A stretch of 64,000 nucleotides of DNA from Dimorphilus gyrociliatus (taxonomy: Eukaryota > Animalia > Annelida): the NCBI GenBank assembly GCA_904063045.1, contig CAJFCJ010000024.1:987777-1051776 (forward strand), in the 5' to 3' direction. The position numbers and the translations under genes are program-made. Under the pieces are notes generated by a model. The model worked only from the letters and a program-made list of their open reading frames with translations, searched no databases and was not told the origin of the DNA. Shown here piece after piece: positions 2,631 to 58,862 of this stretch. The stretch's first letter is position 1, and each line of letters starts with the position of its first letter.

Positions 2631-5567
2631 AAAGCGAAGTTTTCATTATTAAATAACCTTGAGAATTCTAGTGTTTTATTCTAAATAAACCTAGATATGC
2701 TATTCTTTTTTTGACATAAAATTAAAGAAGCCGCTCAAGGGGTAAACCTCTAAAAAAAATTATTGTACCTTAGACACGCTAACATCTATCAAAATCTCCT
2801 CTATTGTATCTTATTTTTGATTGAGTATTTATCTCTTTTTATTTTATTCCTAGTGACCTCTGAAGTTTGTTAGCTTTATTTCCTAGAAATATATATTATT
2901 CTCAATATCGACTTTAATTTATGCATAAAATGTTTATTAGTTTCTTTTCATCTAAAATACTTTTCTTTCTATTTAAAATAGCTTGCTTTATAACATAAAA
3001 ATGTTTTACTGAATCATTACGTTTTAGCGTATGTTGTATATTTATAGCATGAACAATATGTAGTAAACTTTGCTCCTATTAAAAATTTTCCTCCATATTG
3101 ATAAGATGCTTTGACTTTAGAATACTTTGAACCATATGTACAACTCTACCGGATTTTGATCCTGATTCTTTCGATTTATATTCTCATATATGAAACTTCG
3201 AAAATATCTTTTAGTTTTAAAAACTATGTTTCACGGTGATAAAAAAGTATATGGTACTGTTTAGGCATTTCATTAATTTCTTTCATGTTCACCTAATTGA
3301 CATTGAAAACTGATCTTTCTTTTTATCCCAAACACTTAGCTATTTATGTTTATACTTGACTCACCTTCAGAAGTCTTCAGAATGTCATTATTAGTTTTAC
3401 TAATGAATTTACTTACTAAAACCATGTATACTCTCACCAATAAATATCATGTAGAAGAAATTTAAGAGTATAAGATCTAGGTAAATAATAAACCCCTATC
3501 TTCAATGGAAACTAAACCTTAAACATTCCTCTTGCGTTTAATTTAATAAAAGGGGTTATGAGTTGAATATCTTCTATTCTCTCATTCCTTCGTTGCTTTT
3601 GTCTCTTTTTACCTGTCGGAAATATTTACTTATAATGAAAGTAATTAGGATTATTATAATTATTAACATAAGAATTTCAAAAATTTAACAAATACATTAT
3701 TAAATGATAAATCTATTATGGTACAGTTGACACATGTTTGCGATTTGATTTGACAATTCTCTGTAAATCATGTACAGAATAGAGATGTTTTAAATTTCCG
3801 TATCTAATGAATTAAGAAACTATCTTTCGTTGAAGTAATATAGTTACATAATATCAATAAAGCTATTTATTTGTTCTGTTAGGATCAAAATCAATATTTC
3901 TATGAAATGAGCCATTGCGTGACAAAAAGAAACAGCATTCTATATACTATAGATTCTGTTCTTCAGTTTATTCAGGTCTTTTTTATTGTTTGTCGGTGAT
4001 CTATGTAAAATTTAAACTAAAACGAAATATAAATCAATCTACAGCAAAACGGATTCGTGTAACTCGCCTGCAGGGATCAGTATTAGGCAAGTCGAGTGAA
4101 TAAACAATGTAACCAACGTCATGCTGATTTCAGTTCGGTTCGCATCAGAGTTACTCAAAAGAGCGTAAAAGGACTACAAAAATTTAAGTCTGTAAGAATT
4201 TTCAATACGTAAATTCTCAGTTAATAAGAAATAACGTATTTTAACATCCAAGTTTTATAAATAAGACATGAATACTGATTTGTTATATCAAACAAATCAG
4301 TAACAAATCGTTAACGTCGTTTACATTCTCAATTCAGCTACTAGTGCTTTACGACTGCTAGTCTTTGGTCAGTCACCTTTCAATCCCCTGGTCGGTCATA
4401 CTCTTAATCTTAGTATCTCTTCTATAATCGAAGAGAATACTGTAAAGTCATATTCTCAAGTTTTTTTCGACCAAGGTTAGCTAGGGAGCCGAATTACTAA
4501 TGAAATGCTTTCCTTCAAATTTATTTCGACTATCAGACATAGACTAAGTTTACAACTTAATTTACAAACAGATGCGCACGATACGCAGACAGTAAGAGAA
4601 AGAAAAATACACCTTAATCCTTTTCCATAAGAATGTTATAGAAGAAAACAATAATGGATCTACTAAAGAAAAATCAAAACAATGCCAGATTCGCCAATTA
4701 CATAACATTACTTCTATTAATTAAGAATGCTGCTTCCTTCTAGGAAGTTCTTAGTTTAAGCAAATTATCAGATGCGATGATCGACATCGATAACCAGACG
4801 AAACAATGTTACAGGTAAAATTTCACCCAGTATGTAAATAAACTGCAAAATTAAACTAGTTCATAAGTTTGGAGTTATTTATTAATAGAAAAAGCAATCG
4901 ATACTAGGTAATAAAAGTAACCTTTTTGAATGACAAGGTTGGCAACCTCAAGCATAATTAGGTCGTAACACCAGACGAAAAACTATATATTGGATATACT
5001 AATAGGATTTATTTTGTTAAAACTAAACTTTACTGTTATTATGATACTATATAAGTATCAATCACCTTATATCTATCTCTACGCTAAAGCCATTCTTCTT
5101 AGCTTATAGTGGATATATATAAGATAGAACTCAGGAAACCGATTAGAAGTACTAATTGTCCTTTCAGAACTCGAGTAAAGACCATTGTCGCGATATATTT
5201 CTAAGAATTTTACGTAATAGAGTCTCTAATAAACACACGTATTTATAATTTATTGAAACTCTTTATCGATGCATTGACAACTTATATAATTAGATAAAAA
5301 AACACCCTTTTCGTTTATTTCTCACCGTTTCTTTTTTTAGAACGCCATCTGGTGATTGTTTAAACTGCGATTTGTTCATACTATAGTCACTACCTACGCC
5401 CTTTAATATTTTACTATATGATATTAAAAAATGCGGACCTTCAGAGTCAATACTTGCCTTTGAATCACCAACATACGGGGTATACAAACACGCCCTTCTT
5501 CGGTAATTGAATGCTGCGGGTTCAAATTTTTTCAAGATTATCAAAAAGTAATTGATTTATTACGAAA

Positions 5568-35356: not shown

Positions 35357-38300
35357 ATGACGGCATTTGAAGGTTAGTGACCCTAATAATTTAAGTCAAT
35401 CTCAGGATGACATGATGATTTACCTAAAGAATACTTTAATTCCCTTTCAACCGGCACATTCAAAAAGTCACTGTCCTTTATTTTTGTTGTTGTAAGCCTC
35501 GGTCCGGAACAGGCCTAGATGCACCTGAATTGTATTCTTTGCCCTGGATAGATAGCGTCAGCTTTTTATATTCTGTCTAGACCACCCTGGAACATTTTAT
35601 GAGTTACGTAAGCTCCAAAAAAATATATGCGATTATTCTAAACCCTATTCTCTGATCAACGAAAATACCAAACTCTGATTTTTTCTTGAGTAAAGATAAA
35701 TATGGCTTGTTTCAAACAGAAATGGGTGTTATGCCAGAAATCGGGCAAGCTGTTGAAGATATGGATTGGAGGTTGGTAAAAGATGTTTCTTTGTTGTTTC
35801 TCATTAGTTGCTTGTTTTTAAGTGGCCGTTAAAGCTAATTTATGACCTTAGGATTGTCCATTCCCGATACAGAAGTCAAATAGTATCAATAGTTAAGTTT
35901 AGAGTTTTTTTTTAATTCTTCTTTGTGTAAAAAATTAATAAGAGGTTTCAAAATATTGTATTAATATATACAGTATATATATACAGTATATAATTCATTA
36001 TATGTAAGTTTCGAGAAAGAAAACGCATTAAACATCTTCAGTAGATCTAGAAGTTGTTAGGCAATAATCTGTAACTAATAGCTGATTTCAAATGAAAGGC
36101 TAACGAATCAATTAGCATATCTTATCATATCAAAAAATAAAGTTAATAGATTAAGAAGCGATATAAAATATTACATTGTCTGGAAAATAAATGTAATGTT
36201 TGATTATGTTATATCATAGTTTCATAAAAAAAATGTAAAATTTATATCGTTTGTATATGAACTCTGATCAGGTGTACCTGTCCCTGTTAAATAAAAAGCG
36301 CGCACAGTTCAAGAGCCAGAAAAGGTTCTATCAACCGATATACAGTGTCCCTTTAAGATGACACCTGTTGCAATTTATAATCTCTTTAAATACGATTCTA
36401 TCACTCTCTGAAGTGATATATTAATGCAAAAATAATATTTCTTACCGAAGAATCAATTCCTTTATATATTTCAAATCTTTATTAATCGTAAATGTATATA
36501 TTTCACTTTTCATTTTATAGCAAGTATTACTTGAATATTATGCATATAGGGGTATTTGCATATAAGCGTATATACAGGATATATATATTTGCAAAAGTAT
36601 ATGTATACACAAATGCTTATATAATACGTTCAATCTATAAAACGGTTGCATATATTTCTCTTAAAATACAACCTGGACGAATACTACTATAGCTTTAATT
36701 GATTTCAGCTTTTTATAATAAAAAAAAGTATATAGCTCTCATAAATATGTCTTACGCCAGTGAAAGATGGTTTTGTTATACATTTGGTTTAAATTAGCAT
36801 ACTACATAAACATATTTCATATAAGTTCCGTGACCCTCAGAAATGAGGAAACTCTGCAATTTCTAAATCATAAAAAGTATATTGACCCTTCGCTTAGGTA
36901 AACATTTAACAAGGCAACGCAGCACCTGTGCTTCATTTAAATATTATCTAAGAGTTTGTGAGCGTTTTTTTTTTATATATGCATATATGACCGATATCTT
37001 GTATATTTTAACCTTAGCTTTGCTTTCTATTAAAGACGAATGCATTAACTTTGGCTCGAATATAATGATAAAGTTGGTAGTAAAATTAGATATTAAATTC
37101 GAAATTAAAGATTTTATAGCCTAAAAAAACACTATTTACTGAGTGTAGATTAATTTCTTTCAGCCTTTTATCGTTCTTCCTCTCAACTTTTTATTATTTA
37201 CGCTAATATATATATACGTACTTTATTGACCTGGATACACCTATCATAAAAACGATTGAACGAGAGATGAAATTTGAATCTTTCGAGCCACTTGGTGAGC
37301 GTCGCCAATTGATAAACGGTCGTTATCGAGTTAACTTGATGAAGGAGAATATTACAATTTGTAAATGTTTAGAAAAAAATTCTCCATAATTCTTTAACGG
37401 TCAAACGCTAATAATGAAATTTTCAATATTTCCAACCTTTACAAGAAGTCTATTTCTTCTCTGTTTACATTCGATGTTATTATCAGGAAATTAAGATTTT
37501 TTTAAACTGAAGTACGATAAATGAATTTAAGGCGAAAAAACGAGCCATCTTTGGAACGAAATGTGTTTGAAGGCAGTTTATCCTAAATAAAAGGTGATTG
37601 AAATAACAAACAAAATGTTTTTAATGGAATCCATTTTATAGCGATCAAGTTTATACACTCATATTTAGTTTCTGAGAATCTTCAAGTTTAATTGAATGAT
37701 TTGTTATTTTTTCTATCGGTTTATTTTAAATTGTCGAGTAATCCCTTGTACAATAGGTGAAATTTTGAATTTTTATTTATCCATACAAGTGCAACCGTTT
37801 TTCGCTGTAACACTGTCAATGTAATTTATAATTGTCTGGTTCCATTGTCATTTACGTTTACTCGAAAAGAAATTGTCTGATTTAAAAATATTACAAAGGT
37901 ACAGACAGAAAGTATTATTGAAATTTTACTAGTTTTAGTTATCTATTCATGCCACTAGACTTGACGCACGCTTATCGATGAAAAATAATCTTTTTCTTCT
38001 TTGCCAAATGGTTTTTTGCGCGGGAAAAAGACAATTGGTCCGCTTTTAGAAAAAGAAAAGTGTCGACTTTATTTCTATTAAATATGGATAACTAATAAGT
38101 TTTTCTTGCTAAATTGCATAAATGAAAACATTAAAGAAGCTATTCTTTTGTTTACCATAACATTTTTTATTAGCAAAATAGCCTCTCTCTAAATAATGGA
38201 AATGTTCCTTTCCTTTTACATAAATTAAGGTCCATGACCATTTTATAAATATATCATCATCAAGTTTTCACCCCTGACAATTTCATAGTATTAGTTAATA

Positions 38301-41300
38301 CAATATTTCCATCTATTAAAGAATTGTATGTAAATAAGGATTCCCTCTGCAGCTACAATTCTTACTTTGTTCAAAGTGACCGTGAAAAATTTCGACTTCT
38401 CTACACGATAGCAGAGGTAGTCAGTTAAATGAGAGAGATGATACTCTTTAACCCAAATCTTTGCATGTTGCCAAATTAATAGACATGTTAATTAGCACAA
38501 TGGACATTGCTAAATCTGCCTGTTCACACGAAATTAGACTAAATTTTTTTCCCACTTGTAAACTATACTTACCATCGAATTATGACAAGTTGTTTTATTT
38601 AATTTATCTTTTATATTTATAGGCAAGAATCCTGTGGGCTTTGTTTACTACTAAACAATTCCAAATCTTAATTAGAAGTATGTTTAATAATATAATAAAC
38701 CTATCTAGTTGTCGACCATTAATCATAGAGCCGAGTCAGCTAATTTATAATATCAATGAAATATATCTTTTGCGAAATACCACTCACGTAAATCAAACTG
38801 AAATAGACATTCTAGATTACCTTAACGACATTACTGGATTAACTTGATCTGTCAATTTAAAAAAAAGATCCAAATTTACCAGAAAACAAGAGACTGTACA
38901 TGTGACCTATAAACGAAGCACCTGCCATTAAAGACATATGGAGCCGATTGCACGGACAACGGCCGGTGTATTTGACTAATATTTCCTTCTGTTTTGTATA
39001 TATTCCGTAGCAGTTTCATCGTAATTTGATCTCGCAAAGAAAAAATGTTTTTGTAGTTTCATATAACTTTAAGGCCGATAACTTACAAATATGTTATTTC
39101 TTTCTCCTTGAATACAATTCTATTTTCGCACTCGATAATCTCTAAGCTATACAGGTATATTACTTAATCGTTAGAAATGAAAACTTGGCTCTTTGTTGGC
39201 GTGTTAGAAAAAATTCAACATGATTTAATTTTTTCAGATAGTAAATATTTTATTTTTAATACATATACAGTATATTTATTTATTTATTTATTTATAAGCA
39301 TGTTAGTATTCAAACATTTTATTTAATTCTTAAAGATTAAGTTCTTACTTTAGGTATTTGATAACTAGCTTATTACCGGTAAGAAAGCATTAAACAGGTG
39401 TCAATTCTTTTCCTGTAATTTAACCTTTTTGCGCTCGACTGCACTCTCGGCTTGCTATAAATTATTTGAACGTTTTTTATGCTTAATTTTAAAAATATCG
39501 TGTTCAAAAAAACGATGTGCTAAACAGTTAAATTACTTATCTCTCAAATTACTTCAATTATATTAAGCTGTTGTACTTGAACATATATTCCATTACTCTG
39601 GAAATGCTATCAAAGTTTATTTACTTTTGCTTACTGTATTTTGTTACATTAGTCTGTAAATAAACAATTAATGTTGAATACATCAACAATTTTTAAACAA
39701 AAAATAACATTCAAAGTAAAGTATTAGTTTTTTGAAGACAATGAACGAAAATAAAGATTTCTTTTGTTTATAATAATTAGATAGAGTTAATTTACATTGG
39801 ATTATCTTCTAAATAGAGAAAATTATATTATATTGCGATAAAAAACACCCATAATTATGGTGTATAAAACAAAGTATGTCACACACTGCCAGTCAAAATA
39901 GAAAAAACTTAGTCATATTTACAGTGTTTTTTTTTCTTTCTTTCTATTTATATATATATATACAAATTAATAAAGCAGAGGTATTGAAAAAAAACTATAC
40001 TCTAAAAACTGAAATGTTTAAAATGAAGAATACGAAGCATCTAATAAAAACTTAAGCGGCCCTTGAAAAACAATACTTCGTCTAAAGATCGAAGTGAATA
40101 TTCATCATTGTTTAGTCTGAATTTACCGGCTGTAGTATTAGCTAACTGTTTATCGACTGGTTATGAGAATCTTTTGTCTGTCATTACATATTTGCTTGCT
40201 CCACTAATACCTTACTCTTTTCATAGCTTGCCAACGGATGTTCAAGCAGAAGCCATTCCACTTATTCTTGGGGGAGGAGACGTTCTAATGGTAAATAAAA
40301 AATTAATATTATTCTTGTAAAAAAAACGGAATATATCTAATATGAAAATACTTTTCATTATTAGTCATTCTGTTACTTATTGATTTTCGTTGTAATTTCT
40401 GTTTAAGGCGCTAAAAAAAAGCCTTACAACATATAACTTCAATTTACCAGACATTTCTTTTTGAAAACACACATTCTAAATTGGCGCATCATATGAAAAT
40501 ATATCACTCTTTGTGGCACAGACGTTAAGAGAGCTCTTGACCTTCTTTTACATCTAGAAATTTAATTAATCTCTCCAACAGCCACTTCCCTATTACAGAG
40601 TAGAATTGTTTTTAACCGATGCTTCATCCTGTTATTTTTCTGTTTTTCTGTTGAAAGAGATAGTGATAAGGAATAATCTGTCAATTGTCCAAGTTGGCAA
40701 TTATGCTTTAAAAAATACTTATCACTTGTATAAATGATTTAAATTTTTTTTAGTAAGAGTTGTTGAAGAGTTAATTCAATTGAATTCGTTTTGAAAATAG
40801 TTCACTATTCTTTAGCACTTTAGAAGACATCTATTATATTATGAGGGTATAAAGGTAAACTAACAAAAACCCCTTCAATCCCTACTTTTTACAATTTACT
40901 ATAGTCTACGAAGAAAATCTTTATGTACTCTTAGATAACGTAAGAAATATTTAAGCGTTGAACTTGCTCTAAATTACACAATTGAATGTCTTACGTAAGA
41001 AAGTATAATATATAAAAGGACATCAGTTAGTTATGACACTTAAATAAGCTTTTATAGCATAAGGGAGTGTACTAGACTCCTTTTGTATTGAAAATTCAAT
41101 CGTGTGACTAGGCCCTTATCTGCTTTCCCGCTCTTTTTTATTATCTCGCAACATAAATCTTAAGAAAAGAAGACTTACGACAGATATGCTCTCCCATACA
41201 TCTTGGCCAAACGGCCGACTTTTACGAGCAACGGTTTGCTCGTAAAAATTGGGCACGGGGATCGAATTCTACCTCTATATAGGCCTATACATTTTTCGCA

Positions 41301-41821
41301 TCGCCCAGGCACCGCAGCTTTTTGTTTGCCCGGTTATGACGTCATGTCATGAATATTAATGAGGCGGCGACGCGAAACGCGAGGCAGTCGTACGTCTGGC
41401 GGCGGACCGGTGTGTATCGAAGTTTTATTTATTCAATATATAACAGTTTATCTATATAGTTCGATATTCGTTATTATTTATTAGATCTATATTTCTTTAT
41501 ATGAAAAAAAAATAGCAACATTTAGATGGTAGAGTGAAAATTGACAAATGTAAAGTTATGAAGTTTTACGATTTGTATTGATGCGGGTGACTGATTATAA
41601 TGAAATAAATGGCGAATGAAATATATTTTGCAATAAAACATAAAGTATATAAATATATAAAAGGAATATATTACTTGTTAAAAGAACTAACATTCTCTCA
41701 TCGAATATGAATATTTCTATTCGCTATTTCTTTTCGAGTCATTTTTTTTGTAACTTATCAATAATATTTGCCATTGCAGCTGTTAACTTATAAAGGATAT
41801 TATACAGAATTCATATAAGTC

Positions 41822-41855
<34 letters not shown>

Positions 41856-41866
41856 GTATATCTGTC

Positions 41867-41900
<34 letters not shown>

Positions 41901-44900
41901 CTTATATACAGTATGTAGATCTTTACATCTTATAACAGAATGACATCGCCTGTAGGTGCACTAATTTTTTTGCGACACCCAACTAAATCACAAGAAAACT
42001 GAAGGCTTTTGATAAAAAATGTATAACAATACTTTTAAAGGAGCGATAAACTCGAAACCTACTGCGCTCAAATACTCTTGAAAATTTATTCAACCGTTTT
42101 TTATATAACAGTTTAAAACTATTTTATTAAACTCTTGTAAGTAAAAATAGAAGTAGTGAATTAGTTTTAATAAGAGAATATCTATCTATCTGTTCCCCTA
42201 TTTTTTTTTTTCCCTATACTATTTAATGAAGAATAAGCAGAGGTGAGATAACACTTATCTTATCTTTAAGATATCTAGGTCATGGAAATTTTGAAAATTT
42301 TTTTTGTAACCAATTCAACCGAAATTTCTATTTTAGAATTCGAACATTTTTAGATACCGTTTCAACTCGTTAAAAAAAAGATAGTTAATAAATTCATAGG
42401 TTTTTTTATATAAATTTTTAATTAGGTGACAATTTGTATTCTTAGTTTCTTTAACGTCTGTTAAAGTCTTTGTTCTCTCTACTTAAACGATGGATAATTT
42501 TATCAATTAAAAGTTTACAGTGAATATAAATTTGAACTCATTAGACTTTTTCTCTTTCAATTCCCTTTTCATTTCAAATTCTACCTTGTTAGTAAAAATA
42601 GGAAATTTTTTTTAAACCACGTTACAGTTTTTGACAATAGGAAGGGCATTGTCATTTTTCTCTTTTGACCTTTAATTCCATCAAGTTGAGACTCTTGGGA
42701 AAAAGTCATCATTTATTACTTAGATATTAACAGGCTCATATCGGAACCGCGACTAGAGCATATTAGAAAAAGAGATTTTACTAAGAATCCAATTTCAAAC
42801 CGCCGGTTTTTCAAACCACTAAGTTTCATCATAATTGCTACTTGTTGTATATTGTCTTGTAATCGAATATTTTTGTAAATAGATATAAATAGTATCTATA
42901 AAAACAAATTGTATCCATTCTTTATATGGAGTCTATTTAGACTTTTCAACGTTTGCAACAATTTAACGTCTCTTAAAAAAGACTGACATGAAGGACGTCT
43001 TTTAGCTTAAAACATTCACAGGAATATGAGATAATAAAGCGCAATTTTTTATGGTGTTGAATGAGTATAGGGGTTGCCCTTTGAAATGCAATGACCCTGG
43101 ATAGTTGCTATGGCCTTCCTTTCTATTCTTCCTACTAACGCTTTTTTTCCCGAACAGGCCGCCGAAACTGGCAGTGGCAAAACAGGAGCATTTTGTTTGC
43201 CGATTATACAAATTGTACAAGAAACTCTTAGAAATGTTAGGGAGAACAAGGGAAATAAGGGTGGAGGTGGAAGTGGAGCAAGCGGTGGAACTTCAAAGAG
43301 TAAGTATTTTGTTTGGTTGTTTTTGGTTTTTTTGCTAAAAAAATAGAAAAAACAGAATTTTTCATTTATAGACTATTTCTATTCATTGATAATAATGTTT
43401 TATTAACAAATAGTTTATTGGAAAATGCTATTACTTCACTGTCATCTGCGTTTTGTACATATCAATTACTTCGAAATATACTGTATGACTCGGGTTACCC
43501 TTAGAAACAAAATATTTCGATTAAAATTCACTTTTTGAAAAGTTTTTAGTAGACTTCTTAAATTTCTTAGATGTATGCAACAATTATAGATAATCAACCA
43601 CCTAAATAGAAAGTAAGTCAGCACTTACCCTTAAAATAAAAGCTAGACTGCTTATACTAATAGATTAAGTATTGATAATAAAAATATAAAAAAGGAGAGA
43701 AATAACTCCCTTTCTCTTGAAGATTTGATAAACTTTTAATTGAAACATTTTCGTATTTCAAAGTAACGAAATTTTTGACTGACGTACCATGTAATTCCTT
43801 TTCATCGGTAAAAAACTTTATTAGAGAACCTCTACCGTTCGGGGCAGATGGTCATCAATAAGCTTTCTAAAATACGAAGAGCCGGCCTCTCAACTATCAG
43901 TGCTTTTGAGATTTCATTGGATTTGATTACAATCTCGCTTGAATAAGTGTCAAAAATAACCTATGACCCTTTTCAAATATAGCGTGAATATTCGACCGGT
44001 TCAACACAGGAACTGCTTATTGAATATTCGCTATATCAATGACAGAATCGTGCTTTAACCTTCATCTATGACTTTAATACACAAAAAAAAAATTTCCAAT
44101 TTAGTTGATATAGAATGGTGATTTATAAAAGCATTTTATTTTGTGTTATACTTAAATGTAATATGTTTGCAGTGTTAAGCTGTTTCGTAAACTTTAAGTT
44201 AAACATCTCAAAACTACTACTCTTTTGTGTATGATTTATTAAAGGTCATGTATTGAATTCCGGCGAAACGTGAATAATTTTTCACGCGGAAGTAATGCCA
44301 CTTAAAATAGAATAATAGCCTTTTTCAACTAAAAACGCCCGATCATTAATTGACAGTTTCTCGAGAAATTTTTCCTCTGACAAAAATTTATCATACGATT
44401 TTCCCTTCAGATTAATCTCTTTTAACTTTCAGACTCGAAATGGAAGATGAACCCTTTCGATAGGGGAGATAAATTAGCTATCGATTCAGACGGAACACTA
44501 TGCCAAAGTAGAGATGCTAAAATATGGCAAGGAACAAGATCTAATAAAGGCGTAGTTGGAAAAGGGAAATATTATTATGAGGCTAAAGTAACAGATGAGG
44601 GACTATGCAGAGTTGGATGGTCAACTGCAAAGGCTTCTTTAGATTTGGGGACTGATAAAGAAGGATACGGATTCGGAGGAACTGGAAAGAAAAGCTTCGG
44701 AAGACAATTTGATACTTACGGCGAGGTAAGCTGAAACTGACCGCTAAATAGTATATAACTGTAGACCATATCAATTAGAGCTAAATAGATACTTAATAGC
44801 TTAATCCTTAAGTAAAGAGTATTGAACAATTTTTTTAAGAAAGATACTACAATTTAATTGTTGAATTTGGAATATTTGATATTTGACGAAGCTCTTTTAA

Positions 44901-47900
44901 AATTAATGTTTGAGGCAATAAACTCATAGTGGATCATAAGCAATTTTTTGCTGACTCTTCATATTTGAAGAAGATACGTATAACTACTATACGTAGTTAG
45001 CTTACTTGCTAAAAAATGGGTTTTTTCCTTCCTTGAGAGCCATGCGCTAACTTTTTTACGTAATTTAAATTGATTACTCCAAAAAATCGTGTTATAATGT
45101 ATCATCATTCGTCGTATTCTAAGTGCTCATAAGCACTTTTTAATGCAAACGTACATACTAAATTGAACTGAATTAAATATTCTGTTAAAATCTTCTTACC
45201 TATATATACAGTATATATATATTAGTAGTTAAAATAATTATTTATTCCTGTTGCAATTTCATTATTAGAATCGCTTAAGGGTTAAAAGATATATTCGCAG
45301 TCATTATTCCGTATCATCAGTTCTTAGTCATCATACCCTAAGCATAGTAAATCAATTTTTCGGATGGGCGACTCTAATCTTATACAATAAATAGGCTTTT
45401 GGTATTAACGACGTTATCGGCTGTTATCTGGATTTGGATTCATACAGCGTTAAATGGTCGAAGAATGGTGAGTAAATTATTTTGTTCTCTCTGTATTACA
45501 AAGTACAAACTATTGGAAGTATTTTTGTTATTAATAACATGTCAGTGGAAAATGTTGTGCAAATATTTTGTAAACGTTCTCTAGATAAGGTTATCGTTTG
45601 GGGTAGCTTATTTTCAAATATTTCTTCGGACCTATTACGATTTATATAAATAAACAGTGCTATATATTTCTTTACATTTGTATGAATTTTATTCACCAGG
45701 AGTTGATTTTGGAAAAGCCTACGATATTCCCGCACATTTACAGAATGAGACCTTCTACGCTGCTGTGTGCCTTAAGGTTACTTTTTTTTTCTACCAAAGA
45801 TTTGTTTAACCTATTTTGTTTCTTTTAGAATGCGGAAATGAAGTTCAATTTCGGTCACCAAAAATTTGCTTATGAACCAAAAGAAAACTTTAAAGGGCTA
45901 AATACTGCTGACTCAAGTAACATTGTCGTTTCTAAGATTTCAGGTATTTGCTTTGTTGGGACAAAACACCTTATGTTGATAGTAACTTTTTTTGCTAAAA
46001 ACAAAATACTAAAACAATTTAACGCAACAGGTGGCTCTACTGGTCCCGTCACCAAACGTCCGAATGCTCCTTACTCAATTATTATTGAACCTAGTCGAGA
46101 ATTGGCTGAGCAGACCTACAATCAGATAATAAAGTTTAAGAAGTATTTGAAAGATCCAAAAATAAGGTATGTTAGGTCAAAAATTCATGTTATTATCAAA
46201 GCCTATTGTGGAAGAAATATTTCTTTTACATTCTGTTAATCTGTGGTAACTCTATCGTAGTTTGTCTTCTACAAACGTTCATGTACTTAGACGTTGTGTT
46301 TCTTCCTTTAGTGGACATTTAGCGCAAATTACCAGCATACTTTTGTATACGCCAAAGAGAATATCCTTTTAAGTTACAATTAGATATCGATTCCTTTCTC
46401 TAAAAATAATCATAACTCATTTCTAAATATTTTCCATAGAGACTGTATTTAAAAAGGATAAAGATAGAATTCCTATAAAAGCGCCATCTCTTGTCGTACG
46501 CAATACCTTTAGCAAAAAGATTACTTGTAGTCTCTATGACCTAATTAGCAAAAAAAACCTCTTTTCTCTGTTTTAAGCAGAAATACTGTAGTAAATGCAT
46601 TTATGCCTGTGTAAAGAATTCTTTAAAGTAGACGAAATCTTCAGTCTGAATTTAATTTAAAGCTTTTTACTGTTAATAACATTTTACATTTCTGTACACT
46701 TTATGTTGTAGCATAATATGTAAGCATAATGAATTATCAATCTTAATGTTTTGTCTACTGAAACTGTATACTGTACTTTAAAGGAAAACAGTAGATACTT
46801 AATTTTTTGATAATTAAGAAGCCATGCTTTAAAAGATCTTTCAAATATTTCCCTCAGAGAATTGCTTATAATTGGTGGAGCTAGTGCTAAAGAACAAGTA
46901 GACGCCCTAAATTCTGGTATTGATATAGTTGTAGGAACACCTGGGCGATTAGAGGATTTGATTTCTTCTAATAAATTGGAATTATCGGCTTGCAGGTATT
47001 TTTTTACTAAGAAAATTTTTTATGCCTGACATTAGAAAGTGATTTATTTGCTCTTCTAGATTTTTTGTTCTCGACGAAGCCGATGGCCTACTTTCTGCTG
47101 GTTATGGTCATTTAATTGAACGGTTACATAGGTCTATCCCAAAAGTGACTAGTGATGGGAACAAACTACAGATGGTTGTGTGTTCCGCCACACTACACTC
47201 TTTTGATGTTAAGAAAATGGCAGAGAAATTAATGCATTTTCCTACTTGGATAGATTTGAAAGGCCAGGTAACTTAAATTTTTTTTCTTTCTCTTTTTTAA
47301 AGACAAACTGTGTACTTATTGCATTTTTAACCTGCAAATTATCAGCTAAATTGTCATAAAAGGTTGTTAAAAAAAGGATTAAATGAAGGTTGTTAGTTTA
47401 CAATTAATTAATTTACAAAGTGGTTTAGAGATTGAAAAAAAAAGAAATAAGCTTTTTTAAACGGTTTTATTTAAGTAGATGTAATTAAGCCCAAATAAGA
47501 GCATCTTCGACCTTGAAGTTTGTCTCCAAGATCCATTAATATGGTAGAAATTGCTTTCAAACATAATTAGTCACGAAACATTTTTAATGTCAGTAGGATG
47601 TTTTACCAATCTATATTCAAGTTAAAGGGTACCATCTAGACTACCAGAAAGGTAGAACTCCCTTTTTTTCTATTTTTTAACTAAGTACCTTCAATTAGGC
47701 TTGAGATTAGATATTAAAACTATCTTTAGGTCGAAAACATCTGCCTTTAATAGACTGGCTAAACATATTTTACTATATGCTTCATTATCCCAAGAGAAAT
47801 ATAAAACAAACATTTTAAAAGAGATATAGAAAGATATTACCTAAATCCTATGTGTATCCTATTGACAAATCACAAATATTACCAGTTCCTATAAAATACA

Positions 47901-50900
47901 GTATAGAGATCCTCCTCAATTAATATTGCATTTAGTATTTTCTAGAAATAGACAAAGAGGTATTGGCTTTTTTTTTATATACCATATATGTACAAAGCTA
48001 TTATAATTTTATATTTTACATAAACATGAGAATGCATAGTAACGCTCTTCAATAGGTAATGATACAAAAGCCTTCACAAGGTGATTATTAACAATTGTAG
48101 AAAGCTTGCTTTTTTTCGCTTTTTCTTTGGTTTACCAACGTTACTAGTAGATGCGTAGTTGATTTCTTAATCAAAGAAACTTGAAAGAAAACTCTACTCG
48201 TAGTTAGGAAAAGAAATATAATATACATAAATATAATTTCATTTGTTTTGAAAGTAAATTATTTCTCTAAAAATTATCACTCGCCCAAGTAGAAACACTC
48301 GCTAGGGAAGTGCTTTGCCATACAATACTTGAAATATTTATATCTCTTGTTATATATACAGTGCATACGCGTACAAATATGTACATCCATAGATGCATAT
48401 AAATATTAGGGATTGACATATTTTAACTAGAAATATTTGTTGAAAATGACTATTAACTAAGCATAAAAAGTAGATATAAAGCAGTAATTAATATATAAAC
48501 TCAGTATGGATTAATTTTTTTCGTTTTTCTTTCAGCTATGTAATTTTTTTATTCTTGAGATGTTATTTTACATTTACCTGATCGGTATTTATACTAATTA
48601 CACTTTTATTCATAAGAAAATCCCTTGCAATTAATGAAAAGGGTCACTGCAAGTAGGTAGATGTAGGAAAAGAATATTATAGGAAAGCGAAAAAAACAAG
48701 TTTAAGCGTATTTTAGTAGCTTTATGACTTTTACATATAATACAAGAACCTTCTCGCCAGTGAGACGAATACTAAGTTGACTCTGCAGCAAAAAGTCAAT
48801 GAGATTTTTCAATACAAAATTAACAGACTCTGGTGAAATCCTCTTCACGTCTATAAAATTTTGATACACATTTCGTGCAAATTTTGTAAAAATATAGGAA
48901 ATCTAGACTAATTATTACCATAAAATGAATATGATATCAGAACTTGAATGTTTCGTAGATAATTATATCTCCTCCTTTTCTCTTGTTAGCTTTTGTTTAA
49001 CAAAGACTATTTAAAAAATAATATTAAAAGAGAAACCAACAAAGCTTTTTTGTCAACTTTCATCAAAAATAAGTATTTTTCAATCTACTTAAGGATGTCT
49101 TAAATTTTTTGTTCTTTGTACTATAATTAATGTGTTACTATCCGACTTAGCTATTACTATTTTTTTTGAAATAGGATAGTGTTCCCGAGACCGTACATCA
49201 CGTAGTATTAACTGTTGATCCAAGAAAAGATGAATCGTGGAAAAGCATACGGAACGGAATACAAACGGACGGTGTCCACCATAACGATAAACAAAGAATG
49301 AATGTTGAGACTGCGGGTTTGTAAATTTTTAATACCCTTCTTGCTTATCAGGATTGCAACAAATTCGTTTACCTCTAGGCTACTAGAATAAGATAGCGTT
49401 AGTTTTTTTTCTTATTCTATTGACAATGTAATATACAAGCATTAAAGTCATAAGTCATACAGAAAATATCCTTGAAAAGTTATAACAATGAATTTCTATA
49501 CAAAATGTATGATGGAAAAAAAAACTACAGTCCATAAGAATAGCATAAAAACAATCTCAGTCAAAGACATCTATATACAATATATACAGTAGGTTGATTT
49601 AAAATGTATATGAAATGCAAGCAAATCCTCCCTACTTCTCCTCCGAGGAAATATCTGCAAGCTGTATTCCCTTTTGAATTGTTAAACATAAATAGAGAGC
49701 AATCTGTTCGACTTGTAAATCTTTTAGTTCTGCAGATAGATTCAAGTAAGAATATATCTTTTGAATTAGGGTATAATGTGTTTGCCCTTCGTACTAAATC
49801 GTTAATTCGCGCACAGAAATTCGTCAGTTATAATCAAAGTCTCCAAGGTTATTTGTTGCTATTTATTACTACCGGTTGTAAATCAGGTTAAAACGGCTTT
49901 AGTGAGTGATTCTAATTGATTGTTACTGCCTAACCCTCGTTGTTCTATTAAGGTTGACCCGAGGGAGCATTACGAATTATTTTTTACTTGAAAAAATTAG
50001 CTTTTCTTGCCTACAATGGCCACAAGCAGAATCCACAATGCTCGTATGATGAAGTGGGGTTAATTCCTACTTATCCTTATTTTCTAAATCACATCCTATT
50101 GGTGTATTTCAGCTGTGGTTAAGGAGCATTATAAGAAATTGATTTTTGAAGCCTGGTTATTCCATTTTGTCGAATTTTCAGTTCCTATTGAAATTAGGAT
50201 TGTAGAGCATTAATGATTTTTTTTAGCTGGTTATTGTTGTATTTGTTGTTCCTTTTTTTCCGAAAGGTTTATTTACATTAATTCAATGTTAAGGTTACAA
50301 TCACATATAACAATTTTACACTGTCTCAATCAATTTGGCTCATCATCTTTTCTTAATCATACTCACCTGGTTTACATTGTTTGCATTGTTTTAGCATTAT
50401 TTCTGATCCATCTTCAACTGTTTCAGCGTTTCGACGACTTTTCGGTCTCTTATAACAAATTCTATAAAAGCCTCGAATTCCAGGTGCTGTCAATTGAATC
50501 ATAACCGCAGTAAAACTACAGTGAGCAAAGGCAAGCACTTGAACAACGACATCGGCCATTTGTATTTGTGCTTTCCATTTGCTATCTATCAGTTGTAGTG
50601 CAGTCGTTGAAAATTGAATAATGTTAATTAGAATAAGAGGGAAATTTAAAAAAATATAACTTAGAAGAATAAGAAGAGAACACTTTGACCAAGCTTCTTC
50701 TGTTCTATCGAATGTCAAGTTAACTTCATCTTCTTCGATTTGTCGTGAATGCAATTGAAATTTTTGTCGACTTCAGTTAGGTTTTTATTATTTTTCGAAT
50801 TCCATTTTTCAAATTTAAAGATAGCTTCTATTATGGGTTGTACATCTATTAACTCTAGAATACTCTCTCTCTCTCTCTCTCTCTCCCTCTCTCTCTCTCT

Positions 50901-52835
50901 TTCTCGCTCTCTCTTTCTCGCTCTCCCTTTCTCTCTCTCTGCCATTTCTTTCGACGTATATTTGTGTTGACGTAAAGTTGGCACAAGTCTAAGCTATTTA
51001 TTATTTTAATATATATACATATTTTTGAGGACGTATTTTTTAGAAAGATGTACAGATATCGGCTGTATTAACGTTATATAAATCTTAATACTACATAAGG
51101 CACAACTGCAATAGATGAAAGGAGCTTTGATTGTCTTAAGTTATATTTTACCTCTCTTAAGATGAAAAATGGTTTTAATATTTAGCTATATTGAAATTTG
51201 GTCTTGGGAAAATAATAAAAACCCCCTACCTAATGCCAACAGTAACGGCAAAAGCTATTCCGATACCGAACAATATCGGTGCATAAGTGTTTAGACTTGC
51301 AATTACGTAGGGCCAGTAGAGCGTATGAAAATCTGGATATACCAAATCGAAATAACACCCCCATATCTTGTCGATAGTATGAGACCACATGGCGTGAACA
51401 TCTATTGATAAAACTCCTATGAAAGCCGCCGTTGCAAGGCATTTGGCTTTAAAGGGCGAACATATGAAAGAAGGTTTGAAAAGAAACACTGCCCTTTCAC
51501 CGCCCATTAGCACAGTACACCATGCAGTCCAATGAAGAAATGTTTGGTCCGTAACTGTATGTAATTTACAAGTCCATTCATACAATTGAGTGAGATGTCT
51601 AGTTTCTGTAAGCTTTGAAATTGCGTCTAAACCGGGATCTAATAAAAGAACCAGAACGTTTGCTGAACAAATTAACTTAGCGAAAGATGCAGTACAATGT
51701 TCATGATTGATGTTGGAGAGAGAGGGAACAATAGCTAAATTACCAAATATTCCTATTACCGCCAGAATGGGTAGCACGATTGATGTAAAATAGTACTTCA
51801 CCGACTCTTCCGTAGTATTGAGGAGCGTATTATTTGAGGTCCTGTTCATGTTCCTGTACAAAGAAAGAGCGTTAGAACTGGTTAAAAGAAAATTTTATTC
51901 TAAAGGAAATGAATCTATAATTAGGAGATTGCTATATTTGGTAGATGTGCACTTTTTTTAATTGGAAAATTTCTGCACCAACATGGTATTTCAATTGTAA
52001 ATCATTATTACAGTTTGTTCTAGAACAATAAATATGGGAGAAAAAAGTTATTGCTTTTGTAGGCCTAGATGTTAGAAAAGAATAAAAAAGCAGGGCAAAA
52101 CAAGGAAAAATCAACAATCATCATGTAAGAAAATAAGCCTGTTTGCATGTTAATGGGGATCTGTTGAAGGTACCCTTACGTATATTACTAGGCTGCCACC
52201 AAGATTAGCTGGAAATTCATCACGTGATTGTGCCACCGTGTTAGTTTTTTGTAACAACCGGAAGAACCTACCATCTGAATTGTAGACATTCACTTGTTTA
52301 AGTCTGAAAAAGGGCTTTAATCTTTTCATATTTCCTAATAAGCCCTATGAAGAGCCTGATATTTACGTAATATTTTCTATTCATTCGTTACTTTTTTCTT
52401 TTATTTAAAAGTTTCTTTTACATTAACAGCACTTTACGATCAAAACCTCTAATATTCGATTATATAGTTTGTTCTTTTTTCTCCTACTGTTACATCTTAT
52501 TTACCCACCTTCTTTGACTAGAGAATCTATCAACTATTTTATGTCTAGCTTGCTATTTCTTTCTTTCCTTTACCTCCCACTCTTGATTCTTAAGAATGTT
52601 AGAATTTTTTCAACATTTTTAATGTAATAGTCTCCAATAAATAGCATCAAGATATATACCATGATATCTACTTGTACTTAATTAAATGCTATAAATCTAT
52701 GTGTTTATCTTAACTGTTAAGAAATTTGACATCCAATAGCATCTTAATACAAATTAGTAAAGGGCAACGTTAATTAAGGTGAAGTGGCAAATCTTAAGAC
52801 ATGGCAAAATCAGATAAAATGTGTACCTGTTGTTG

Positions 52836-52867
<32 letters not shown>

Positions 52868-54738
52868 CTGTATATATATAGTGTATCTAAAAGTATACCC
52901 TATACGTATTACGAACTAGATATCTGTTTGTTTTGAAACGAAAGACATAAAATGTTGGACAAAGTTTATTATTAAAGGTAAATTAGTATGATCAACTTGT
53001 ACATTTCATTTGATTAAAAATATTTGTTACTGCTTTCATCACAGATGGATTGTAACTTTCTACTTGACTATCGTATAATATGTAATCTCTTTTCTCAATC
53101 AAAAGTCTGTTCCAAGACCGTTGTATAATTTTATCTTTAATTACCCGTTATCAATCTTCAATTTCAACAAATTGAGCTTTTAAAGTGGTACATTTAATGA
53201 AAAACATTAATTAACACCAAATCTAGTAAGGCATAAACGATTTACACTTATCTCTTTGATTTATAAATCTTGTAAAATTTGTCAAAAACGTCTGGTAGAA
53301 ATATTTTCATTTATAGCTATATTCAACTAATATATCTATATAATTAACCTGAGAATAACCTAAGGTGTAGTAATTGGTTTCGTTTCTAAGTTTTTAAAAA
53401 AGAAAAGTCTTGATTAAGAAGTAGGATATCTCAACAAGCTATTGAAAAAATTGCGTTTAATGACTTGAGGTAGTCGGTTGTATAGTAAAGAATTTCACCG
53501 GCGGACTATGCAGCCGTCTAACTTTGGTTATTTCACGCTAACTCTACGAAAGCTTAATATTATGTTACTTACGATTGTTGTTGGAGGATGACGGACGTCA
53601 GACTGAGGAGCTGAGCTAAAAATTTTACAGATGGCGCTCTCTCCATCAAATACTGGATGCTCTTTTAATAATTGCATCTCGTAATTTTACGGTTTAATTT
53701 AGTTAGTAAGGAACTTTATACGTTTCCTTTTTAAATTGATTATAACATCTAGATATCTTCTTTGATATTAACCTTTAGATTTGCCTTTCATGTCATATAG
53801 TCTATTTAGTACATTTTGCTTAAAAAGTACTAGTACAAAGTGTATGTACAAGCTTATTTTAAATGATGTGTTCCTGTACGTTTATTTTATTTATGAATTA
53901 AAAAATGTATTTATTAAAGGGCCATTTAGTTTTATCTTGCTTTTGTATTAATTCTTTTTTTACTTATTTAACACATAGTCTGATTAATCGCCTATAACAA
54001 AGAGATATCTGTCATTATTTCTTTCTATTTTCACTCTTTTTTTTCTCTATCAACATGACAATTAAAACAACTCAATGTACAAGAATACGTCAAAAGCTTC
54101 TAGCTGTAATCGATGTTGTTGTAAAAATATCTGTCTATATACTGTATATATCTCAGAGAGGAAAAATAACGATGTCTTTAATTAATAAAAACAAAAAACA
54201 ATAAACAAAATGTAGCCTAATGCACTAAGATGGATTAATCTTTTCATTTATTTTCATCCAAATAATCTTTAACAAACAATTAACACAACTATCTAAATGG
54301 TTGAAATTGTAAAATAGCATATGGTACACGACCGAGTAGTAATTAGTTCGGTTCGATAACAAAAGGTATCTTAAGGCTAAAAGCGGTTAATCGTGCCAAC
54401 GAAAGAATATAAGATATATATTATATACATGTATACTTTTGTATGCTACATGTATAAATTATACTAAACCTATTATATATTCCTTAATCAATTTATATTT
54501 ATAAACAATGATATATATGAGAAAATTATTGGGAGATAGAGCACGCAAAGACTCTTCTTCTAGAGTACAAATATTTATCTCTTAGTTTTAAATAATAAGT
54601 AAAATATATGTGAAAAATAATGAAAATCGAAAATAGTGCTTTGAAGTTTCTACTCTTTCATAAAGTGTTTTTCATCAGACAGTTTCTTCATGTACTGTAT
54701 ATTAGTTAGCGAGCTGGGTTCGTAGGTAGGTAGGTAGT

Positions 54739-54771
<33 letters not shown>

Positions 54772-56673
54772 GTCTATAGTGTATACTATTTAACAATATC
54801 TACGTATAAATTCGTTTTATATAATAAATTCGCTCTCTCTCTATCTCTGTTCGTAAACAACATCACCATTTAAGAAAAGGAGAACAAAAAAACAAAAGAT
54901 TTTCAAGTACAGAAAAACTAACACCTAATGTTTTCGTTAAGTGACTTGAAAAATTGATTATTGCACATGAGAAAACTTTTATGAATTATTTAATTTCTTA
55001 GTTATTATACGAGGAAAAGTCGTTGTTAAAGTTACTTATCTATCAAATAATAATTGATTGAATTACATGGAAGTGGCTAATCCTTTTTGCGAGTAATATC
55101 AAATAGAATAGGAAATTAGGCTTAATAAATAATCTGCTTTTGTTATTGAAGTAATTGTTTATAGTAAATAATTTTCAACAGTGTTGAATTAACGTTCTGA
55201 GATATTCCCAAAAATAAATAAACAAATATATTTACTATAATATATTTACTATATATCAATAAATGAAAGAAAAAGAAAGTTAAAATAGACGAAGAACGAC
55301 AATATGCAGCTATGTAATTTTATTTTTTTTCTTTTTTCTATATTTCAAACAGAATCATTATCAGAGGCGGTTAAATTACTGAAAGGTGAATACACTATTC
55401 GTGCTATCCGAAAGCATAAAATGGATCAAGCCATCATTTTTTGCCGAACGAAATTAGACTGTGATAATTTAGAATTGTATTTGAAAAGTCATGAGAATCA
55501 ACGAGGAGAGCTCAGCTGTGTATGTTTACACGGCGATAGAAGACCCAATGAAAGGACAAGCAATTTGCAAAAATTTAAGGTTAGTGTACCTGTATTTGAA
55601 ATTTTTTATTTTACTAATCGAACTTTATCTTCTTATTGAATCTCCAATTATTTTTCATTGTTATCTTTGTATACTTGCTTTCAGAAAAGAGAGGTCAAAT
55701 TTCTCATATGTACTGATGTAGCTGCCAGAGGATTGGATATTTCAAAATTACCCTACGGTAATAACTGCTCTTTTAAAAAAATTAAACTTTTATCTTATCA
55801 GCACTTTTACTTCAGTAATTAACGTTACTTTGCCGGATGAGAAGCAGAATTACGTGCATAGAATAGGCAGAGTTGGACGAGCAGAGAGAATGGGTCTGGC
55901 TATATCATTTGTTTCAGCTGTGAAGGAAAAAGTACGTGACGTAATCCTTCAATAACTAATTTGTCCTTAAACTCTGATCGTTACATACGTGACAGTATAA
56001 ACGGAATTTCTCAATTTTCTCAACTTTTTTTCTTATGTTAATTGAAAAAAAAATAGAAGGAAATAGCTTTAATATAGTTTTTCTAGTTATGAAGAAAAAA
56101 CACAGCAAAGAGAGTTGTGAATGAATAATTAATGATATCGTTCATTTTATTTTTCATGCCCTCACTTTTAACCACCTTTGCTTTTGTCGTTTTTCTATTT
56201 TTATTGTAGAGCTACGCTTAGATTCAATTCAGTAAAATAACGATTTATCCCACGTAATTCGTAGTATTCTTAGAAGCAATTGATTATTCATTTATATGCG
56301 TATACAAAAATTCTTCTCTTTCTAGGTTTGGTATCATTCCAATTGCTCAAATCGAGGAAAAAACTGCTATAATACTTTACTAACTGATCACGGAGGGTGC
56401 TGTATCTGGTACAACGAACCTCAGTACCTGGCCGACATTGAAGAACATCTAGGCGTCACCATTGACAATGTCGGTACAGATTTAGATGTTCCGGTGAATG
56501 AATTCGATGGAAAAGTTTCTTACGGACAAAAGAGGAAAGTTGGTGGTGGAACGTACAAAGGCCACGTTGATATTCTAGCTCCGGCAGTCCAAGAATTGGC
56601 AAATTTAGAAAAACGCGCTCAAACATCATTTTTAAGCTTTGCTCACGAGAAACCATTTATATCAACTCAATAA
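35357..56673 (+). CDS. DDX1: ATP-dependent RNA helicase DDX1 (DEAD-box with SPRY insertion), 16 exons: 35357-35372, 35720-35771, 40227-40290, 43158-43299, 44433-44725, 45395-45467, 45700-45776, 45829-45943, 46031-46166, 46858-46995, 47060-47267, 49175-49316, 55353-55579, 55685-55757, 55816-55931, 56326-56673
   Basis: [47 protein letters not shown] (GLCRVGWST), [27 protein letters not shown] and [13 protein letters not shown], all collinear with DDX1. Confidence 0.97.
41173..41420. promoter_or_regulatory. GC-rich island in DDX1 intron 3 (candidate enhancer or internal promoter)
   Basis: About 52% GC by hand count over 41201-41420 against an AT-rich background. It contains TGACGTCA (41337-41344), a TATATAG, GGCGGC boxes and a 12-bp perfect inverted repeat. 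Confidence 0.45.
50353..51849 (-). CDS. Divergent class A GPCR nested antisense in DDX1 intron 12; exons 51849-51230 and 50770-50353 (3' end uncertain)
   Basis: N-terminal N-glycosylation sequons, seven hydrophobic segments, TM1 GNL, a TM3 cysteine (EWTCK), an ECL2 cysteine (WGCY) and ERA at the DRY position. Confidence 0.8.
50862..50942. repeat. (CT)n/(GA)n microsatellite within the nested GPCR intron
   Basis: Direct reading of the sequence. Confidence 0.9.
53461..53530 (+). ncRNA. let-7: let-7 microRNA precursor; mature 5p at about 53466-53487 (UGAGGUAGUCGGUUGUAUAGUA)
   Basis: 20 of 21 nt match canonical let-7. The 3' arm (ACUAUGCAGCCGUCUAACUUUGGUUA) folds back over 26 positions with only three mismatches, and the loop is 18 nt. 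Confidence 0.93.
54739..54768. repeat. (AG)n microsatellite
   Basis: Direct reading of the sequence. Confidence 0.9.
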
Positions 56674-58182
56674 CTTTTTCACTATTTGCATGAATATTGT
56701 TATTCCGTAAATTATTACTATTTGGGATTCGTCTGTCTGCTAATTCTAATTTAAGCGTAGAGCTCTAAATATATTTAGTATCATTCAACAATGACTTTCA
56801 TCTTGAAAAAGTACCAAGTTCGTCGAGTACACTGCATATGGAAACGTAATAAGGACAATGGAGTAGTACTTTCCTTATATATATTAATTGGGAGGTCGAG
56901 ACTAAATTTAAAATCTTTGTTTTTTGCTCTTACACTATTTTGCCAATAGAAAGCTATATTATCAGTAATGATTAACTAAGGTTGAAAAAACATATTCAGT
57001 ACACGCTATTAAAAGGAGAGACATTTCCATAAGCGCACTGCTTTGAAGTTGTATAGGCTTCGTTAACCCGTTGATAATTGGCTACTAAATAACAAAAGAG
57101 AAAAAACAATTATTAATTACTATTTTGTTTTATTATTTCATAAAAATTGTACCATGCATGGATAGTATAATATCATGAATACATATATAACCCTAACCCT
57201 AATACATCTATACACAAGTTAAATATACAATCTTTAGCGTTAGCATAAGTATACAATGTTACAAACTAACAATCTTATTAAACGTATATTTCTGTAATGC
57301 TAAAATTCTCTTCGTAGAGTTAATAGTTTTAGTAGAGTTTTTGTTTGTTCTCTTATTCTTTATCCAGTCTTCCCCTTTCTTTCGTTCTTTAAGTGGTTTA
57401 TTTTGGCAAGAAATTACAAATTATATTTAATATAATAAAGTAAAGATAGCTTACAATTACAAAATTGGCATTTACTCTTTATTCATTTATAGAGTAAAAA
57501 CTCAGCTTATCATAGTTTTTTTGTGCTACCGACAACTAAACAAATAGTTTCTTTCCTTATTTTCATCTTCTAGGCAAAAGAAATAGAAACATCAACAACT
57601 AAATGTGTTCGTATTCTCTTTTCGTATCCTGCGTCGAATTATTTGATGTTTCTTTTTAATGTGAGTATTTAGATGATCAACCCTCCGATAAGATTTCTTG
57701 CAAAATTCACAGACAAACGGCCTATATTGACTATGTACACTTCTATGTCTCTTTAGTTCGGAGAGTCGATAGAAACTCCAAGGGCAACTTTCGCATTTAT
57801 AATTTCTTATTGCTGAAATAAATTAAATAGCGATATTATCAAAATTTTTGTTCTCACCGAATAAAACAACAAAACAACAAGAACCAAACAATTTAACAAT
57901 AATAATAAAATACAATAGATCGTTTTTCAAGAAAGAACCAAGGCCACGTTAACCTCTGCGATTTGTTAGAGAAAAAAGGATGAATGGCTAGCTATCCTTG
58001 AAATATTTAAAATTCAAGACTATGTTATAGAACTTTACAAGGCTGTCTTGGAAAATAAAGATCAAGCACATATTTAAAGCAAGCTGCCCTTGAAAAGAAA
58101 AAAAAAACAGTTTCAACCTATTGATATTTCTATTATTGAATTTAAAACTTTATTTATATATTTATATACTTCTATATATATT

Positions 58183-58862
58183 TTAGGTACGATCTAAAAG
58201 TATTATATATTTTGTATTTATATTTATAGAAGTTAACTTATTTTAATAATTTTTTTTATATTATAGCCTATAGTCTACTCAAGAAAAATTAACTATTCTA
58301 TTCCTTAATAGTCCACCCCATTGTTTATACATGTTAGCCATTTGGATTGAAGTATATATATCCCGTTCCGATAAAAGGAGGATGATTTTCTCCTCAAAAA
58401 CTCCCGGATGTCTTTTTTTAGCTCATCCAAATTTTTGTAACCAACTCCCCTGATATGATGTTTTAATCGTCCAAACAGGTAAAAATCAGATGGGGCCAAA
58501 TCAGGGCTGTATGAGGGATGTGGACATACAGACGATCCCTGATTTCCGATAAAATCTGTTGTGTACAGACTGGTGGAGATGATGTGTGTTTGTAGGTTAG
58601 GGAAGCCCTCTTTGATTCAGGATCATAGAGCTGAACCCAAGGTTCATGCCCACAATAGCTTTTTAACCTTGTGTGAATAGTCTTTGAAGAGGTTGTTGCT
58701 TGCACCGAAATAATTTTGTAGTGGCTTGACAGAGCCAAATGAAAGTTTTCACAATGAAAGTTTACAGATTAAGTAATATATTTACAGTTTAAGTATCAAT
58801 AGTATTAGTCACGCCGTTTTAAAATTACAGCAAATTGTATGATATTTTCAGATCGTACCTAA
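58183..58862 (-). mobile_element. Internally deleted, frameshifted mariner (Tc1/mariner) element of about 680 bp
   Basis: TIRs of about 32 bp start TTAGGTACGATCT (58183 onward, and the reverse complement ending at 58862, followed by TA). Transposase fragments include WVQLYDPESKR, HPSYSPDLAPSDFYLF and FYRNGIYILQSKWLTCI. Confidence 0.9.

Follow-up and report, generated by a model that had tools for sequence, protein, structure and literature searches.

The locus described here raises the question of whether a let-7 sequence that departs from the consensus at nucleotide 10, and that lies within an intron of DDX1, is a working microRNA gene and, if so, how it is transcribed. Few animal microRNAs are as rigidly conserved as let-7. 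We investigated the locus in a 64,000-nucleotide stretch of DNA from Dimorphilus gyrociliatus (hereafter the window; G+C content about 31%, in keeping with the published 32%), together with contigs from public sequencing runs. Coordinates of the relevant features are collected in Table 1.

Table 1. Features of the let-7 locus and its host intron, with positions counted from the first letter of the window.
Feature	Position	Strand	Basis and remarks
DDX1 exon preceding the let-7 intron	49175..49316	+	translation; conserved in contig L002 at 3059-3199
DDX1 intron containing let-7 (6036 nt; coding intron 11 in the present map)	49317..55352	+	flanking exons; RNA contigs
Nested, spliced multi-pass membrane-protein gene	50353..51861	-	ORFs; RNA joint; ortholog in L002
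pri-let-7 core: basal stem, arms, loop	53451..53533	+	83-nt exact run versus L002
let-7 precursor hairpin	53460..53531	+	RF00027 match; fold z -4.9
Predicted mature 5p arm	53466..53486	+	seed canonical, C10; arm from homology only
Terminal loop, 18 nt	53487..53504	+	fully conserved; without GGAG; GGCG at 53500-53503
Predicted 3p (star) arm	53505..53526	+	G53516-C10 pairing, from predicted fold
Conserved block after the hairpin	53582..53606	+	about 58 nt downstream; 1 mismatch versus L002; GGAG at 53583-53586
Alternative splice donor, TTA/GTAAGG	53705..53706	+	spliced to the acceptor of DDX1 exon 12 in a single X2 contig
DDX1 exon following the let-7 intron (exon 12; Helicase_C)	55353..55577	+	human DDX1 8tbx_A, E 6.5e-29; Pfam

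The predicted mature 5p arm is a let-7 21-mer with an intact seed at its 5' end (nucleotides 2-8, GAGGUAG, 53467-53473) and with C at nucleotide 10 (53475). Twenty of its 21 letters equal those of the Rfam let-7 consensus, nucleotide 10 being the sole difference; given a 22-nt mature RNA, the presence of A where the consensus has U at nucleotide 22 is a second small difference. The 21-mer is unique: even when up to three mismatches are allowed, the 64-kb window holds no further match, and the number expected by chance is zero.

The surrounding RNA forms a stable hairpin of about 70 nucleotides in which both arms are paired. The minimum free energy fold of 53451-53545 on the plus strand has -34.9 kcal/mol (z -4.91), a value that none of 200 shuffled sequences equaled, and in its dot-bracket representation C10 begins a 12-bp helix with G53516 as its partner. 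In the Rfam consensus, nucleotide 10 is an upper-case A with U as its pairing partner, and the change to C and G is thus compensated on both arms. The first-pass annotation of this DNA had claimed a let-7 copy with C10 and an intact seed, a canonical A at this position, a stem preserved by pairing with G53516 and a loop that lacks GGAG; all four claims were confirmed, the last for the whole terminal loop. The Rfam let-7 model, RF00027, matches the hairpin over its full length (model positions 1-84) with 45.8 bits (E 5.6e-8 per 1 kb, or 1.3e-6 over 24 kb), compared to a gathering score of 53.5, and the deficit falls mostly on the short loop. A scan of the whole window against Rfam at gathering scores gave no match.

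Much of the evidence for function comes from a second species. A word search with the peptide of DDX1 exon 12 led to P0001 (85% identity), whose Logan contig, L002 (24.9 kb, run SRR23372228), is collinear with 46079-57825 of the window. L002 carries an identical let-7 hairpin, including C10 and its partner G, within the same DDX1 intron. In a 7-kb MAFFT comparison of the two sequences, the longest exact match is the 83-nt run that makes up the pri-let-7 core, while the intron is identical in about 71% of aligned columns and the flanking DDX1 exons are 80-82% identical. The third codon positions of DDX1 differ in 37% of cases (190 codons). Because the 83 nucleotides are identical despite this divergence, purifying selection acts on the whole precursor, down to its basal stem and 18-nt loop; a neutral stretch of this length would almost never be expected to survive unchanged at such a distance. 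The alignment also shows that L002 keeps two known Microprocessor determinants, namely UG at -14/-13 (53452-53453) and CNNC about 17 nt past the 3p cut (53544-53547). Judged from these sequences, the locus is a genuine, selected, lineage-specific let-7 variant, and the proposal of a functional but lineage-modified let-7 is supported.

Two other readings of the locus were considered. It might be a non-functional or decaying extra copy, with working let-7 genes elsewhere in the genome, as could be suspected of a copy that is solitary and deviates from the let-7 consensus. We regard this as very improbable: a decaying copy is contradicted by 83 nucleotides that are perfectly kept, loop and basal stem included, at the third-position divergence just given, and its substitution at nucleotide 10 is compensated. 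Second, the conserved block might be a DNA element, or its active strand might be the minus strand, encoding an antisense microRNA like mir-3596. The Rfam mir-3596 model does match the minus strand, with 39.9 bits. However, this score is far under the gathering score of 96, and the mir-3596 model is simply let-7 antisense. The minus-strand fold of the let-7 region is also no better than those of shuffled sequences (z -0.54), and a GT..AG junction (see below) indicates plus-strand RNA. We therefore accord this second reading scarcely any probability.

An assembly error at C10 can also be excluded. An RNA contig from a separate study (run X2) spans 52966-53705, including C10 and G53516, with no differences from the window, and the second species has the same letters. 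Run X2 behaves as RNA-seq data, with spliced contigs and with exon depth far above intron depth.

Public data contain further relatives of this worm. Contigs of run X7, labelled organism C, map to 50001-55933 at 85-95% identity, introns included, and differ at the end of the exon that precedes the let-7 intron. Another sequence, P0121, is distinct from both the window and L002. These observations point to at least three closely related lineages of the worm group in public data. No X7 contig lies on 53401-53600, and since these are RNA contigs, this is uninformative as to the hairpin. A search for a third species with the gene nested in the let-7 intron found only P0121, whose 967-nt contig stops short of let-7. 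Finally, a metagenome scan with the C10 21-mer returned one match, L001, which we attribute to chance; the contig is unrelated and coding-looking, contains no hairpin and does not resemble the window.

The host gene is DDX1, whose plus-strand exons encode the SPRY, DEAD and Helicase_C domains (Pfam); the exons were searched singly. Downstream of the let-7 intron, RNA contigs join 55577 to 55683 and 55756 to 55815. The exon upstream of the intron sits in what otherwise appears as an 8-kb gap in DDX1. In contigs from three runs (X2, X3 and X6), the final letters of this exon stand just before 55352/3, which confirms the junction of the two flanking exons. The hairpin is thus within a confirmed intron and on the same strand as DDX1, as had been claimed. 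The position had also been given as intron 12. That it is a DDX1 intron is borne out by the RNA junction, but the number is less certain: there are 11 homology-supported coding exons upstream. An acceptor-like site immediately 5' of the ATG at 35722 suggests one extra short 5' exon, so that intron numbers 11 and 12 are both possible.

DDX1 is long in other respects as well. Between its 5' exons (35722-43160) are introns of about 4.4 kb and 2.9 kb, and the one with let-7 measures 6 kb. The median intron of the D. gyrociliatus genome is 66 bp (PMC7854359). By this measure DDX1 is an unusually stretched gene, which suggests regulatory or nested content in its 5' introns too.

At four other invertebrate-looking DDX1 loci, all of them compact, the let-7 hairpin is absent, and the association of let-7 with DDX1 is therefore lineage-specific. 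The first-pass annotation had drawn attention to a link between DDX1 and the processing of primary microRNAs. Given the four DDX1 loci without let-7 and a DDX1 3'UTR without a let-7 site, we consider this a mere coincidence of names. We also considered a loop in which let-7 regulates itself, and rejected it; seed sites in the window occur at the level expected by chance, and there are none in the DDX1 3' end or in the nested gene.

As to transcription, the X2 contig over the hairpin passes straight from 53705 to 55353. The 1647 skipped nucleotides have GT..AG ends, and no letters are shared at the joint. This shows plus-strand transcription across the hairpin that is joined by splicing to DDX1 exon 12, in line with the suggestion that let-7 and DDX1 are co-transcribed. 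This observation comes from one contig in one run, with a modest depth of 16.5, similar to the value of about 19 in the remaining intron, and RNA contigs cannot reveal transcript starts or levels. In L002, the donor at 53705 reads GC. The spliced contig may be a minor cryptic-splice product of the DDX1 pre-mRNA, or it may represent the first exon of a transcript that begins inside the intron. The hairpin does not appear to be a mirtron: its ends do not meet splice sites, being 4.1 kb from the host intron's donor, 1.8 kb from its acceptor and about 180 nt from the alternative donor. In this part of the intron, a 60-nt stretch of the window (53962-54021) is replaced by six letters, CTTACT, in contigs of X2 and X3, which come from two studies. 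The difference is either a strain indel or a local assembly error.

The alternative of an intron-internal start deserves consideration. It holds that a functional let-7 has its own intronic promoter, with a first exon that carries the hairpin and has DDX1 exon 12 as its default splice partner. The promoter could be a divergent one that also serves the nested minus-strand gene, near the TA-rich region at 52830-52965. The X2 contig begins at 52966 and is spliced from the strong GTAAGG donor at 53705, and contig depth falls at the TA repeat from 75 (51230-52827) to 16.5 (52966-53705). ATAC peaks in unusually long introns were described in the genome paper (PMC7854359). However, the start of the contig coincides with a skipped repeat and hence is no mapped 5' end, and the depth at the hairpin equals that of the remaining intron, as pre-mRNA would give. 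Moreover, the donor is not a GT in L002. We therefore consider an independent promoter unlikely, if worth keeping in mind.

It is instead probable that this dinophilid annelid has, in an intron of DDX1, a functional microRNA gene of the let-7 family. Its transcription proceeds on the strand of DDX1, in the simplest case within the DDX1 pre-mRNA, whose promoter we infer would then drive it. The gene lies on the plus strand, 4.1 kb into the 6-kb intron. We further infer that the hairpin would be excised by the ordinary Drosha/Dicer route, and that the chosen arm would be 5p, yielding a product with the canonical let-7 seed and with C at nucleotide 10; the accompanying U-to-G change on the opposite arm leaves the stem intact. 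Since nucleotide 10 belongs neither to the seed nor to the usual 3' supplementary pairing, the set of let-7 targets is expected to be largely unchanged.

The let-7 intron has other contents. On its opposite strand, 1.6 kb from let-7, is the nested membrane-protein gene, with an intron (50771-51229) that is evident from a minus-strand joint of 50770 to 51230 in X2 and X7. Its protein is 93-96% identical across three lineages, and so is better conserved than DDX1. There was no further relative of the protein in a word search at E<=1e-5 and no Pfam match, and the gene looks to be an orphan confined to dinophilids. The same intron also holds a non-coding block of about 220 nt (49990-50207) that has about 93% identity with L002 and includes exact runs of 43, 59 and 28 nt, and is thereby conserved above the 80-82% of the DDX1 exons. 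On neither strand does this block have an Rfam match or a significant fold, and its part at 50055-50200 likewise lacks a structure signal. The block could be an enhancer, or could belong to the nested minus-strand gene as its 3'UTR. Elsewhere in the window, two adjoining minus-strand ORF fragments (58305-58738) resemble, by eye, the C-terminal part of a mariner/Tc1-type transposase split by a frameshift; they have no Pfam match at E<=0.01.

No match to mir-100 or mir-125, or to any other microRNA family, was found in the window or in L002 at E<=1, and so the let-7 in the DDX1 intron is solitary. MirGeneDB 3.0 already includes D. gyrociliatus, with an annotation made from the genome alone, so that this locus is probably catalogued. 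The novelty first attributed to the variant was therefore overstated. A search for the C10 variant sequence, both as RNA and as DNA, found nothing in the literature covered. The let-7 in the DDX1 intron represents a known gene in a lineage-specific form, rather than a new kind of gene.

A compensated change at the otherwise fixed nucleotide 10, kept in two species together with a frozen loop, constitutes a natural experiment, and the C10 copy bears on which constraints within let-7 are imposed by targets and which by processing factors. The solitary let-7 also documents that the ancient let-7 cluster has broken up in an annelid otherwise noted for conservative genome evolution. Neither the change at nucleotide 10 nor the break-up of the cluster alters the general understanding of let-7.

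A separate issue is LIN28. The absence of GGAG from the loop had been taken to mean that LIN28 control may be altered. However, according to Stefani et al. 2015 (PMC4408804), the pre-let-7 loops of annelids, molluscs, flatworms, flies and nematodes generally lack GGAG. Since protostome loops are generally without GGAG, its absence here is ordinary, and the idea of altered LIN28 control is unsupported. In place of the loop GGAG that vertebrate-type LIN28 recognition would require, this loop has GGCG at the homologous place (GGag in Rfam). The zinc knuckles of LIN28 chiefly read the first and fourth G (review PMC3759924). The same study (Stefani et al. 2015, PMC4408804) reports that the site to which LIN-28 binds in C. 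elegans contains GGAG and lies 170 nt past the 3' end of the hairpin. Like the C. elegans pri-let-7, our locus combines a loop without GGAG with a conserved, GGAG-bearing block downstream. Unlike it, the block is only about 58 nt downstream and contains one conserved GGAG, and neither significant structure nor a second hairpin is predicted there. A single GGAG is by itself weak evidence. Nonetheless, the frozen loop with its GGCG and the downstream GGAG block could be candidate sites for a LIN28-type regulator, to the extent that conserved motifs suggest this. A broader and doubtful conjecture, to which we would give only a small chance, is that dinophilids have dismantled the ancestral mir-100/let-7/mir-125 cluster and have no canonical let-7 but only several derived copies, each of them caught in an intron of a protein-coding gene; in the C10 copy, the conserved GGCG loop and the GGAG block would dock such a regulator. 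If it is true, docking at the GGAG block would be the first control of let-7 from outside the loop in a protostome other than a nematode.

In comparison to known systems, the closest reference is the canonical annelid let-7. In Capitella teleta and Platynereis dumerilii, it belongs to a tight mir-100/let-7/mir-125 cluster (Hertel et al. 2012; PMC3384580). The D. gyrociliatus locus shares with it the seed, the 5p arm, the hairpin architecture and a loop without GGAG (PMC3384580; PMC4408804). It differs in the C10-G pair, in the lack of mir-100 and mir-125, and in its location in the intron of a protein-coding gene as opposed to a polycistronic cluster. An intronic let-7 has counterparts in vertebrates, in which let-7 cluster F is in HUWE1 and locus J is in WDR82 (Hertel et al. 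2012); these are likewise co-oriented with a conserved housekeeping host. However, the host here is DDX1, and the arrangement is of independent origin, with four other DDX1 loci being without let-7. Finally, as in the restructured let-7 systems of flatworms and nematodes, which have several paralogues, the ancestral cluster is broken up, the seed is intact and the changes lie 3' of it. Unlike those systems, the present case comes from an annelid lineage that has been described as genomically conservative, and the copy in the DDX1 intron has only one or two changes.
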